The notes below the pieces were generated by a model. The model did not search any database. It had not been told where the DNA came from and saw only the letters and a list, made by a program, of their open reading frames with translations. 64,000 nucleotides of DNA from Pavona decussata. Lineage: Eukaryota. Position numbers and translations under genes: made by a program. The stretch lies in contig CDRNST010000048.1 in assembly GCA_977016875.1 (NCBI GenBank), forward strand, positions 496,001 to 560,000, written 5' to 3'. Of the stretch, positions 9,850-48,193 are shown piece by piece (positions within the stretch are counted from its first letter, which is position 1; the number at the start of each line of letters is the position of its first letter).

Positions 9850-11772
9850 TTAAGCCTGTGGGGGAGGTACTTCTTCCACGTAGATCCGGGACACTGAGTT
9901 CCAGCCTGTTTCTGCATCAGCTGACTTCACACCAGCACAATTACCGACCCAGAATCCCACACGCACAGTGCCCTTGTGGACTTTCTCACAGACTCCTTCG
10001 ATTTGCCTCACTCGCTGTAAATCCTTTTTGTTGCTATCCCCATGTACCATGTACACTACACCATCAATGGCTGCTGGAGCTGAACACTCTGCGCCATTGA
10101 AGGTGAAATACCATCGCCTGCAGCACACATGGCAGTTACGGACGCGAAGAGCTCCACTCCAGAAGACACGCAGACCTGTTTTGTGTGACATCTTCTTAAA
10201 AATACATTCCTAAAAGAGGAGAAAAATGAAATCAACAACAGGACTAAAATGGAAAACATCAGCTTTCATATAAATATATGGCTTGCGAGATGACTCGATA
10301 TTGAAATTGAGATCTAAATAACCCTACTCATTGATATTTTTGAGATTTCTTCATCATTACATTATAATTATCATCATTGGTCATGATTAGTTATAGGGTA
10401 CAAACTCTCTTCTTAGGAAATAACTAGTGGGGATCTGTATATATCTTGTTGCTAAGAGTTTTAATCATTAAAATACCAATAAAATACCTTAAGTTTGGTC
10501 TTAAAAATGTCATAACGGATGTTAGTATCGTTAGTATTTATATAAAATGTGAATTTTTATTTAATATGAAGTTGAAAACTAGATATTTACCTTGATTAAT
10601 CCGGAGTCCTTTCTATCATTCAGATTCTTAAAAACGCACTGTTTCCAGTTACGCACAACAGACCCTAGAGCTCCTTTGGGGCCTGGGGGACCTTGAATTC
10701 CACGAGCACCTGTATCACCCTTGTTTCCACGTGAACCTGGTGGGCCAGAGGATCCTTGTGGTTCCTTGGGGCCAGGAGGATCTTGGTTACCACGAGCCCC
10801 TGATTTTCCTTTGTTTCCAGATGGACCCGGTGGTCCAGGGAGTCCTTGAGCACCTTTAAGGCCTGAAGTACCTCGTCTTCCACTAGGGCCTTCATCGCCC
10901 TTGTTTCCTCGAGGGCCCATAGGTCCTTCAGGTCCGTGATTGCCGGGTGATCCTGCGGCACCTGCTGGTCCCGCGGGTCCAGGGCTTCCTGGGATACCTG
11001 GAATTCCTGGTGCGCAGAAACATGTACTGTGAACACAAAACCCATATGATGACGATTGTTGAGGGGTGACCTGGATGAAGAAATTAGGAATATATATATT
11101 TTTAATTTGATTTACTATATATCAAGTAAGTGGATAAAATGTTGTTCGAGCGCGCTCATTGGGTACTGAAATTCTGGATAGTATTGCTATTCACCTTCCG
11201 GTGTTTTCCTGTCCTGGCTACCCAGTGTCAGTGAAACCTCCACCTCATTAAAGAATTGCTAATAAGCCTTTACGAGATCAAGTCACTTTTCTAAAAGACT
11301 TTTTTTATAACTGACCAGGTAATAAACTTAAATTTTTCCTCAAGGAACACTAGTTGCTAAACAATAACTGCCCTATTGGATTAGCTGGTGGGGTTTAAGA
11401 GAGGGGGCATTCAAAATAACTTTGTTTCGGGGGAGAAGGTGGGTGAGAAGTTCTATGAAAAGCAAAGTGGCCTTATGGTCGGGTGTTCCCTGTAACAATT
11501 TCCAGTATCTCATTATAAGTGTTTAATGGAATTTGAAGTGACGTGTAATGAGTTGCTGTCTTCTTTTTGAATCCTTTTTTGTTTAGTGGACAGCAGGAAG
11601 GGAGAGGATTGTTGTAAGTTTGTGCCTAGAGTCTAGTCACCAAACTCACCTTGTTGTCGCGTGGTTTGCTGCTGCTGCTGTTGCCATTTGCAGAACACAA
11701 GGTGATCAGCAGTAAGAACAGTACACACAGCATGGTGGTCAGCTGTATATTCAGGCAGCGGTTCGTCATCAT
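9850..11772 (-). CDS. CTHRC1: CTHRC1-like secreted short collagen, copy A, open frame, 320 aa. Coding exons 11772-11650, 11070-10591, 10209-9850.
   Basis: Exon 1 encodes [41 protein letters not shown] (hydrophobic signal peptide) and ends AAG|gtgagt. Exon 2 (cag|GTC...AAG|gtaaat) encodes CVHSTCFC, 39 Gly-X-Y positions and [21 protein letters not shown]. Exon 3 (tag|GAA) encodes ECIFKK...[10 protein letters not shown]...[21 protein letters not shown]...EGVCE...[13 protein letters not shown], the CTHRC1 C-terminal signature. All introns are phase 0 and all exon lengths are multiples of 3. Confidence 0.93.
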
Positions 11773-12366
11773 TCAACCTGTGAACAGAAACTCTCGAGCT
11801 AAGATTCACCACAACTTCGCAATTATCAAAGTACAAGGACTACTGCAGAAAATAGATGACGCGTTGATATTGAGCTTCCTTGTTGCAATAATTAAAGTAA
11901 TGAACACACACAAAAACCAGCTATATAACCGTTAGTTGACATTTTGTTACAGCACAGAATATTTCTTAGAAAGTCATTTATAAGTTATGCATGTTCTATG
12001 AGACAATACCTATTTATCATTAATTGCGGTTGAGTTTCGTCTTAAAGACACAGAATTATTGAAGCGCCATAAATCCTGTATATTGCTAATTTAATTTCTT
12101 TCTAATCTTTTACTTAAACCTTCTGTTTTCATAAGTAAAGAGTCATCACAGTGTGTTCTTCAATACAGCTCATTTAACATTTCATGAAAAATGAATAATT
12201 TAAGTCCTGCCTAAAATTCAAATTGTTTTTGAGAAGATAAATGAATTCTAAAAAATCTTCAGAAAAAATTTCAAATTAAAAATTGAACAAGAACTCAGTT
12301 CAAACCTCTCAAGGAAATAAAATGCAATTTATAGGAAGGAAATCTCTAGTTCTATTTATTACCTAC

Positions 12367-12438
12367 CAGTCTTGCTTGTGCGACTTCAACCATCGAAGGA
12401 AAACTGATTCACCTTTCACTATTACAGAAGCTTTTATC
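12367..12438 (-). promoter_or_regulatory. Predicted core promoter and short leader exon of copy A: GATAAAA TATA-like box 12438-12432, TCAGTTT initiator (+1 about 12405), donor CTG|gtaggt at 12367
   Basis: Motif order and spacing (about -33) are conserved in all five copies (21385-21457, 25710-25781, 34732-34804, 48761-48833). A matching acceptor cacag| lies 5 nt before the first ATG (11777). Confidence 0.6.
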
Positions 12439-45877: not shown

Positions 45878-46292
45878 TCACATGGTAACCGTCGTAGAAT
45901 TATGAAATAACGAGAAAAAATTGGTAACAACTGTAAATTCAGACTCTGTAGGAAACAAACTAGTACCCTAAGAATTTCACACAACACGGTGTATTATTTA
46001 CTGCTACCAGACTTTTATTTGCTTATTTTCTGTTTTACATTACTGCTGGATAAAACTGGCTTTATTCCCTACACCTTTCAAGCTTTAAAAAAAATTAAAC
46101 GCTTGTTTTTATTATCATAATTTACTTCCATTTAGTTAGTATTTCCTAAAATTCAGCTCTTAACCCTTTCTGAATTTTATTCAGTCCGCGGTCGAAATCT
46201 ACCAAGCACCTTAAAGTTAAACCAAAAAAACCAAAACAAAAACAAAACAACAACAACAACAAAAAAAAAAAAACCACCAACAACAACAACTC

Positions 46293-48193
46293 CTAAGCCC
46301 GTGGGGGTGGTACTTCTTCCACGTAGATCCGGGACACTGAGTTCCAGCCTGTTGCTGCGTCAGCTGATTTCACACCAGCACAATTCCCGACCCAGAATCA
46401 CACACGCACAGTGCCCTTGTGGACTTTCTCACAGACGCCTTCGATTTGCCTCACTCGGTGTAAATCCTTTTTGCCGTTTTTTCCATAATTCATGTATACT
46501 ATACCATCAATGGCTGCTGGAGCTGGGCACTCTGCACCATTGAAAGTGAAATACCATCGACTGCAGCAGCCATGACAGTTATGGATGCGAAGGACTCCAT
46601 TCCAGAAGACTCGCAACCCTGTGTTGTCTGACCTCTTCTTGAAAACGCATTCCTGTGAAATATATAAAACAAATAAACAATTGAATTGAAGTGGGAACAA
46701 TCAACATTCACATATATACTTTTAACTATCTAATCTGATCTGGCAGTTGCCCTATCCGATCTAATAGGCAATCCCATAAAAAGAAAGATTTTCCTTACAC
46801 TCCAAGTTTTCAGTTTCACTTCATGCGCAAGCAGTAGTCGCTGAAGTTTCTACTCTCAAAAAAGTTAACATATTATCTTGATTAGCACCTCACCAGGACT
46901 GGTTCATAAGTATAGACATTAGACCTAACAATTACTGGATAGAGTTTTTTTTAAATTAGCGTCACCTTTTTTTCTGCCACGTTAAATAATAATAACTTCA
47001 TTTAGTTGTCAATTTATTTAGTACTGCGGTGCTAATTGCGGATACTGTAAACAATTGAAACTAATAATATAAACTAAACATAAATAACTTTAAAAGTTCT
47101 AACTGGTAGGAAAAAAAGGCAATGTTAATGTTATAATAATAATTTCTATTGTTTTTGGCTTATGATTCTGTAGTTGAGCGTTTACCTTAATCAATCCAGA
47201 ATCCCTATTATCATTCAGATTCTTAAAAGCGCACTGTTTCCAGTTACGCAAAAAAGAACTTAGAGCCACTTTGGGGCCTGGAGGACCTTGGTTACCACGA
47301 GCACCTGCTTTGCCTTTTTTTCCAGTAGGACCCGGAGGTCCAGGAGGTCCTTGAGCTCCTTAAAGGCCTGAAGAACCTCGTCTTCCACTAGGGCCTACAT
47401 CGCCCTTGTTTCCTCGAGGGCCCATGGGTCCTTCAGGTCCGTGATTGCCGGATGATCCCGCCGCACCTGCTGGTCCTGCAGGTCCAGGGCTTCCTGGGAT
47501 ACCTGGAATTCCTGGTGCGCAGAAATATGTGCTATGACCACAAGAGCCATATGATGACGTCTGTTGAGGAGTGTCCTGAATGAAGAAGTTAGAAATATTT
47601 TTTGATTTGATTTACTGTACATCAAGTCAGTGGATAAAGTGTTGTTCACGAGCGCTCATTGGATACTTAAATTCTGGATAGTATTGCTATTCACATTCCG
47701 GTATTTTCCTGTCCTTTAGCGCGTTCATCAGTTTGTCGAAAATAAAGTAACAAATCGGAGCAGGTTTTTTTCCCTAAGGAAGACTAGTTGCTGAACAATA
47801 ACTGCCTTACTTGATTAGCTGGTGGGGTTTAAGGGAGGGGGCATACAAAAGTACTGGTTTCGGGGGGAGGGGTGGAGGTTACGTTTTGTACAAAACGAGT
47901 AGCCTGATGGTCGGGTGCTCATCACAACAATTTTCTGTCGCTGATTATAATTGTTGAATAGAATTTGAAGTGACGTGTAACCAGTTTTTCTTTTTTTTTT
48001 TTTTTTTATCCCTTTTTGTTTGGTGGGCAGCAGAAAGGGAGCTGACTGTTGCCTAAAGTCTGTTCATCAAACTCACCTTGTTGTCACGTGGTTTGCTGCT
48101 GCTGTTGTCATTCGCAGAACACAAGGTGATCAGCAGTAAGAACAGTACACACAGCATGGAGATCAGCGGTCTTTTCAGGCAGTGTCTCGTCAT
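46293..48193 (-). pseudogene. CTHRC1: CTHRC1-like copy C with two premature stops. Exons 48193-48077, 47575-47186, 46652-46293.
   Basis: AAA>TAA at 47362-47360 in the collagen region and GGA>TGA at 46400-46398 in the head. Cys>Tyr in the N-terminal Cys cluster. Exon 2 is 90 nt shorter than in A. The first ATG is mutated to ATA but the second is kept. Splice sites are intact. Confidence 0.9.

Follow-up and report, generated by a model that had tools for sequence, protein, structure and literature searches.

The window analyzed here, 64,000 nucleotides spanning positions 496001 to 560000 of contig C48 in the genome of the stony coral Pavona decussata (602 Mb in 1180 contigs), contains an array of five CTHRC1 genes, all on the minus strand and each with three exons, at window positions 9850-48196. 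The genes were designated A1 (9850-11772; exon 3, 9850-10209; exon 2, 10591-11070; exon 1, 11650-11772), the pseudogene B1 (18012-20825; exon 3, 18012-18371; exon 2, 19632-20096; exon 1, 20703-20825), A2 (23193-25115; exon 3, 23193-23552; exon 2, 23934-24413; exon 1, 24993-25115), the pseudogene B2 (31364-34172; exon 3, 31364-31723; exon 2, 32979-33443; exon 1, 34050-34172), and the pseudogene C (46293-48196; exon 3, 46293-46652; exon 2, 47186-47575; exon 1, 48077-48196). Among named proteins, the nearest relatives belong to the stony corals Montipora, Stylophora, and Porites.

Domain searches were made exon by exon, not on proteins joined across exons. Inspection of the short hydrophobic leader encoded by exon 1 showed a basic N terminus, a hydrophobic core, and a site of small residues (SA/N), the elements of a putative signal peptide. 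Exon 2 encodes a cysteine cluster, the whole Gly-X-Y region, and head residues 1 to 23, and it matched the Collagen family (PF01391; E = 5.3e-18). The other 119 head residues are encoded by exon 3. In copy A this exon matched CTHRC1_C (Pfam PF25815; E = 4.8e-41) with 140.7 bits compared to a cut-off of 27, and all five window copies aligned along the full length of this exon. The intron within the head is in phase 0, lies between ...SGLIK and EC(I/V)FKK, and has AG/GT sites in every copy that retains both exons within the 26-copy cluster of which the window is part. Its position is that of the conserved intron described by Leclere et al. (PMC7058181). The window genes are true members of the CTHRC1 family.

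The condition of the genes in the window is poor. Only copies A1 and A2 have an uninterrupted frame. In A1 and A2, which have 38 triplets, the glycines at stalk positions 26 and 28 are replaced by aspartate and glutamate. The collagen exon of both B1 and B2 is interrupted by an in-frame TAA (at 19788-19790 and 33135-33137), and a five-residue deletion in copy B breaks the glycine register. Copy C, with 28 triplets, has a TAA in exon 2 (47360-47362) and a TGA in exon 3 (46398-46400); the first ATG of its exon 1 is lost, with the second retained, and its exon 3 is a mosaic with a B-like 5' half and an A-like 3' half. By comparison, the 16 apparently intact members of the cluster have a perfect stalk of 36, 38, 48, or 58 triplets, two of them with a single non-glycine position. 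Because the stalks of intact members are near-perfect, and those of the window copies are altered in their glycines or register or interrupted by stops, every window copy is damaged relative to the norm of the family. The system is mostly dead in the window: B1, B2, and C are pseudogenes, and the stalk of A1 and A2 is damaged.

Comparison of the window with itself revealed that a 13.3-kb unit is present twice in tandem (8132-21474 and 21474-34821). Each unit has one A gene and one B gene; the two are 99.8% identical and differ by nine single-nucleotide polymorphisms (SNPs) and seven homopolymer or microsatellite indels. The coding sequence of A2 is identical to that of A1, and B2 differs from B1 at two synonymous sites. 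Given this identity, the array consists of three distinct genes (A, B, and C) and a second A-B pair. The repeat may have arisen by very recent duplication, or it may be an artifact of assembly. If it were an artifact, two haplotypes or a mis-resolved long-read overlap, for example, would have been joined in tandem, and just three genes would really be in the window. The near-identity of the units, with an SNP divergence of just 0.07%, would fit this explanation, as would the exact head-to-tail join and the fact that 7 of the 16 differences are length changes of the kind typical of read errors. However, this array normally grows by recent tandem duplication, other near-identical pairs are present in the genome (L082=L083), and the junction is a clean one within a contig of 1.3 Mb. 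We regard an artifact as rather unlikely.

These results modify the original prediction, made from the letters of the window alone, that the array comprises five paralogs with a C-x4-C-x-C cluster and a stalk of 29 to 39 triplets. Five three-exon CTHRC1 genes are present, but only three are distinct, since A2-B2 repeats A1-B1, and three of the copies are pseudogenes. The cysteine cluster is found as described in exon 2 of A and B but reads C-x4-Y-x-C in copy C, in which the middle cysteine has become tyrosine. Measured stalk lengths of 28, 37, and 38 triplets come close to the predicted range. The nine patch strings and three "invariant" framework strings quoted from the head are all present exactly.

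Expansion of the CTHRC1 family

When the genome was searched in six frames with the head exon, 186 candidates were obtained, of which 150 were scored, all with E values of ≤4e-23; 13 of the 150 have an internal stop. The genome therefore contains at least 150 CTHRC1 head exons. Published Cthrc1 counts are 8 for Nematostella, 18 for Acropora digitifera, 19 for Stylophora, and 31 for Orbicella (PMC7058181), and no report of a family of the size found here was encountered in the literature searched.

Contig C48 has 26 copies in two sets of 13, a minus-strand set at 480-698 kb and a plus-strand set at 872-1148 kb, and the exons of all 26 were modeled. Stops or frameshifts were found in six of these; in three more, the acceptor is mutated or 5' exons are missing from the adjacent 5.5 kb. 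Thus, the birth-and-death that had been proposed from the window is visible in the family, with 6 to 9 of the 26 cluster copies broken or truncated. Recombination was detected with the pairwise homoplasy index (PHI) test (p = 0.037). The collagen exons are 480, 570, or 660 nucleotides long, and these 90-nucleotide steps represent repetition of a 30-residue unit, which makes stalk length a second variable among the paralogs. The exact 30-residue steps, which take the stalk from 38 triplets to 48 and then to 58, can be followed in exon 2 of the C48 copies at 492572, 893460, and 1040560.

The window appears to lie at one corner of a tandem expansion of CTHRC1 that is specific to a stony coral lineage. 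Such a family would grow by tandem and segmental duplication, while unequal exchange within the collagen exon, in steps of 90 nucleotides, could generate stalks of 36, 38, 48, or 58 triplets. Gene conversion between paralogs would reshape the family, and pseudogenization would remove copies from it. The intact members are predicted to be secreted proteins with an N-terminal cysteine cluster, an unbroken Gly-X-Y stalk, and a disulfide-rich jelly-roll head of the TNF/C1q type. For work on these proteins, the intact copies at C48:872-1148 kb are a better entry point than the broken or damaged copies in the window.

Much of this organization has precedent. The cnidarian Cthrc1 genes described by Leclere et al. 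(2020, Genome Biol Evol, PMC7058181) share with the Pavona genes the order of signal peptide, collagen repeat, and CTHRC1 C-terminal domain, the conserved intron near the start of the head, the tandem clusters in corals, and the C1q-like head fold. Variable stalk length is also common to both, with 4 to 54 repeats in the published genes. Thus, cnidarian Cthrc1 expansions, the variable stalk, the difference in stalk length from vertebrates, and the C1q-like head are already known (PMC7058181). The scale is different, with at least 150 head exons here compared to 18 to 31 in the published corals; a total of this size, several-fold above the counts published for corals and obtained from long-read contigs, is new. 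The evidence for gene conversion and heavy pseudogenization is also new. Loop-specific rates, site-wise selection, gene conversion, and the pseudogene fraction are analyzed here and are not part of the published study (PMC7058181).

Two side observations concern database entries. Several proteins (P0001, P0006, P0011, P0024, and P0097) have three to four CTHRC1 heads per chain, for example a 784-residue Oscarella transcript model, and may be either true multihead proteins or merged models of tandem genes. The database open reading frame P0003 is identical with the C48:636791 head exon but continues past the stop of the head, with a tryptophan at that position, which suggests that a gene caller read the stop as tryptophan in a coral contig filed as a metagenome assembly.

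Variation in the head loops

The original prediction placed the differences among the heads in three patches, which correspond to codons 18-28, 54-61, and 91-101 of exon 3. The patches were evaluated in the 21 copies on C48 that lie outside the window and were not used to define them. In these copies there were 2.77 residues per site in the patches versus 1.51 in the framework (Mann-Whitney p = 4e-5), and the ratio of nonsynonymous to synonymous substitution rates (omega, dN/dS) was 0.77 in the patches versus 0.25 in the framework (likelihood-ratio test p = 1.5e-6). As the enrichment was found in copies that had no part in defining the patches, the clustering of differences is not due to chance, and the patches are variable throughout the family.

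The head of a coral homologue with 68% identity (P0009:133-274) was folded with AlphaFold from a 52-sequence alignment in place of the window's own spliced head. The model is an all-beta jelly roll (pLDDT, 93.9; pTM, 0.89). Its matches in VIA-align were the TNF-like domain of Chlamydia Pgp3 (Z, 12.4), a TNF-like lectin (Z, 11.9), BclA (Z, 10.4), the NC1 domain of collagen VIII (Z, 9.4), and C1q (Z, 9.1), and Foldseek agreed on the matches of the TNF/C1q type. The model indicates that the CTHRC1 head is a TNF/C1q-like jelly roll, a conclusion that has been published previously (PMC7058181). The layout of collagen stalk and trimer-type head proposed from the window is supported. The patches map to loops 48-51, 78-88, and 114-121 of the model. 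By topology, these would be the DE, FG, and HI loops of an eight-strand jelly roll, located at the BC-loop end, opposite the N and C termini and the stalk. The BC loop itself (NLNDRKD), for which the end of exon 2 codes, is also variable, with an omega of 1.02.

Individual codons were examined with our own site-by-site codon likelihood test of the fixed effects likelihood (FEL) type (MG94, F3x4, a fixed IQ-TREE tree, and sums over ancestors), the total likelihood of which was identical to that from IQ-TREE to the last digit. Across 25 exon 3 sequences the global omega was 0.42; it was 0.23 in the framework (p = 1e-21 versus 1) and 0.77 in the patches overall. Two codons stood out. Codon 28, the variable position of the motif N-C-H-x-C-C, has seven residues among the copies, with a nonsynonymous rate (beta) of 11 and a synonymous rate (alpha) of 0 (p = 2e-4). 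Codon 60 also has seven residues and beta greater than alpha (p = 2e-3). The two codons fall in patches 1 and 2, and no synonymous change was inferred at either. Weaker signals came from codons 3, 51, 92, and 100 (p = 0.06 to 0.07). With only the 16 intact genes, the p values were 8e-4 for codon 28 and 0.015 for codon 60, and beta still exceeded alpha at both codons when the tree was re-inferred on the whole head.

A similar pattern was found in two other clusters. Framework and patch omegas were 0.29 and 0.90 in cluster C486 (11 copies) and 0.39 and 1.39 in cluster C56 (13 copies), the latter patch value not being significantly different from 1. Candidate codons in these clusters (20, 24, 25, 28, 60, 96, and 100; each p = 0.03 to 0.10) are all in the patch loops, and codons 28 and 60 recur in C56. 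The evidence that variation is concentrated in the distal loops, and that diversifying selection acts on a few of their codons in three different clusters, is new.

Several points weigh against diversifying selection as the cause of this variability. The patches as a whole do not evolve faster than expected under neutrality: their single omegas in the 25 sequences were 0.74, 0.85, and 0.72, none different from 1, and no patch omega was significantly greater than 1 in clusters C48, C486, or C56. In pairwise comparisons of A, B, and C, patch dN/dS was 0.44 to 0.70 with an overall dS of ∼0.3. The original prediction had named patch dN/dS at or below 1 as an outcome that would refute it, and the patch values in C48 are of this kind; at the single codons 28 and 60, by contrast, beta exceeded alpha. 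With 119 codons tested, codon 28 alone passes a Bonferroni correction. Recombination is present, and it inflates single-tree site tests, which are then prone to false positives. Synonymous rates were also ∼1.5- to 2-fold higher in the patches than in the framework (alpha, 1.47 versus 0.84; pairwise dS, 0.42 to 0.55 versus 0.24 to 0.30), and thus a mutational or gene-conversion effect contributes to the patchiness. Gene conversion that homogenizes the framework, or local hypermutability, could account for this difference. Finally, the placement of the loops on one face follows from strand parity and not from coordinates or a trimer model. The alpha estimated for codon 24 was 19.

Loop-focused variability in the family is real, and the evidence of diversifying selection is limited. 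The head framework is under strong purifying selection, and the four loops (BC, DE, FG, and HI) appear to evolve at near-neutral rates, with two or three codons in them possibly driven to change.

Neighboring features of the window

The 3' exons of a DDX60-like helicase gene are located on the minus strand at window positions 59000-64000, and the gene extends from ∼555 kb to ∼596 kb of C48. The 3' exons within the window had no Pfam match, and a protein-atlas look-up of the helicase returned only a generic DEAD helicase. The domains are on upstream exons outside the window, which have a DEAD Walker-A motif (E = 1e-8), the motif QMSGRAGRRG, and PIN-like_DDX60 (PF23002; E = 1.5e-25 and 3e-13). 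The presence of the PIN-like_DDX60 domain settles the identity of the gene as DDX60. A run of 151 N positions lies in its 3' region at window positions 60530-60680.

The original prediction named this neighbor correctly, as PF23002 and the DEAD motif confirm, and took the position of the array directly downstream of an antiviral helicase gene as a sign of a recognition function. The argument from position fails, because CTHRC1 copies flank DDX60 on both sides, those on the far side starting at 616,910. The sole other DDX60-like locus in the genome (C48:753975-754388, minus strand) occupies the interval that separates the two inverted halves of the CTHRC1 array on this contig. Both DDX60 loci are thus within one 670-kb CTHRC1 cluster, and none of the remaining 120 or more CTHRC1 genes is next to a DDX60 gene. 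As the two DDX60 loci of the genome sit in a single cluster and the clusters on other contigs are without one, the adjacency of CTHRC1 and DDX60 looks incidental, and a functional link is unsupported.

Between B2 and C, inside the array, there is a reverse-transcriptase fragment on the plus strand (44484-45627; RVT_1, E = 2e-13) that spans two adjacent open frames and is a retroelement remnant. A noncoding spacer segment at 35435-44435 is 85 to 93% identical to 1-8913 and 49490-58148, and the older repeat unit of the array is a gene with ∼9 kb of spacer. The spacer at 49490-58148, between C and the end of DDX60, has no CTHRC1 gene of its own.

Possible roles of the coral proteins

We consider it probable that the family encodes secreted, likely trimeric, predicted binding proteins in which the distal loops set specificity, so that each paralog would bind what its own loops determine. 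Partners in the matrix or at the cell surface, as in the case of vertebrate CTHRC1, are candidate ligands, and so are foreign surfaces. The vertebrate protein has a homologous head, in representative sequences 44 to 45% identical to that of the folded coral homologue, and like the coral proteins it is secreted and has a collagen stalk. However, vertebrate CTHRC1 is single-copy and slowly evolving and has 12 triplets, whereas the coral genes have many copies, 28 to 58 triplets, and variable loops. Vertebrate CTHRC1 (Pyagay et al. 2005) modulates Wnt/planar cell polarity and TGF-beta signaling.

An alternative that we consider plausible, though short of an even chance, is that these are ordinary CTHRC1 factors of matrix and tissue remodeling, or short network collagens, that have been multiplied in tandem, with exposed loops under relaxed constraint and with "selected" codons that are artifacts of gene conversion. 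A loop omega of ∼0.8 to 1.0 fits neutrality, and the detected recombination, the mosaic copy C, the raised synonymous rate of the patches, and the collagen VIII NC1 domain among the fold matches are all consistent with this explanation. The literature also ties cnidarian Cthrc1 to matrix and growth. Cthrc1 is up-regulated in Acropora branch tips, in the pedal disc of Exaiptasia, and in A. palmata under warming; it is expressed in the epidermis of anemones and, after heat stress, in matrix-remodeling cells of Stylophora; and a Nematostella regeneration screen was the context of its discovery (PMC7058181). The contexts reported for cnidarian Cthrc1 in this literature are growth tips, pedal disc, regeneration, and matrix remodeling, and none is an immune context. 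However, relaxed constraint does not readily account for codons 28 and 60, with seven residues each and no inferred synonymous change, both of which were significant without the pseudogenes and with the re-inferred tree and were found again in cluster C56. Furthermore, 150 or more copies would be unusual for a signaling regulator.

The more specific proposal in the original prediction, that the genes constitute a pattern-recognition repertoire like that of the defense collagens, with patches diversifying under pathogen or symbiont pressure and a functional tie to DDX60, is doubtful, and an immune role of the family is unsupported. The layout does resemble that of C1q and the collectins, the head has a C1q/TNF-type fold with sugar-binding TNF-like lectins among the top matches, the family is very greatly expanded and shows birth-and-death and gene conversion, and beta exceeds alpha at specific sites at the loop tips in three clusters. 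Set against this are a patch-wide omega at or below 1 in the C48 cluster, the restriction of DDX60 to two loci in that cluster and its absence beside other CTHRC1 clusters, the pseudogene status of three of the five window copies, and the published expression of cnidarian Cthrc1 in growth, pedal disc, regeneration, and matrix. The head also lacks homology at the sequence level to gC1q, C-type lectin, and fibrinogen domains, with CTHRC1_C as its only Pfam match.

In bivalves, C1q-domain-containing (C1qDC) families also run to hundreds of copies in tandem, and their distal loops vary. The coral proteins, the bivalve C1qDC proteins, and the defense collagens (C1q, collectins, and ficolins) have in common a collagen stalk or a jelly-roll head of the trimeric type. 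However, the coral head has none of the gC1q, C-type lectin, or fibrinogen domains of those proteins and shares the fold alone (Z of about 9), and an immune role, established for those families, would be hypothetical for the coral proteins. The TNF-like bacterial lectins and the C-terminal domain of Chlamydia Pgp3 have the same trimer-type jelly-roll fold (Z, 11.9 to 12.4; rmsd [root mean square deviation], 2.3 to 2.5 over 119 to 124 residues), but with an identity of 9 to 11% there is no evidence of common descent or of sugar binding, and a shared fold does not in itself show function. A nematocyst/minicollagen reading was rejected, as the paper in which "collagen triple helix repeat" appears concerns nematogalectins and not CTHRC1.

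More speculatively, and with no great likelihood, the CTHRC1 scaffold may have become, in stony corals, a C1q-like, hyperdiversified repertoire of 150 or more secreted recognition proteins. Four distal loops, shuffled by gene conversion and with selected tip residues, would then read microbial, symbiont, or allogeneic surfaces, and the strategy of the bivalve C1qDC proteins would have been invented independently.

If the loops of these predicted binding proteins bind foreign ligands, then corals would possess a large, unrecognized family of soluble recognition proteins with relevance to disease and symbiosis. Otherwise, the array would be a good case of neutral birth-and-death in matrix-protein genes.

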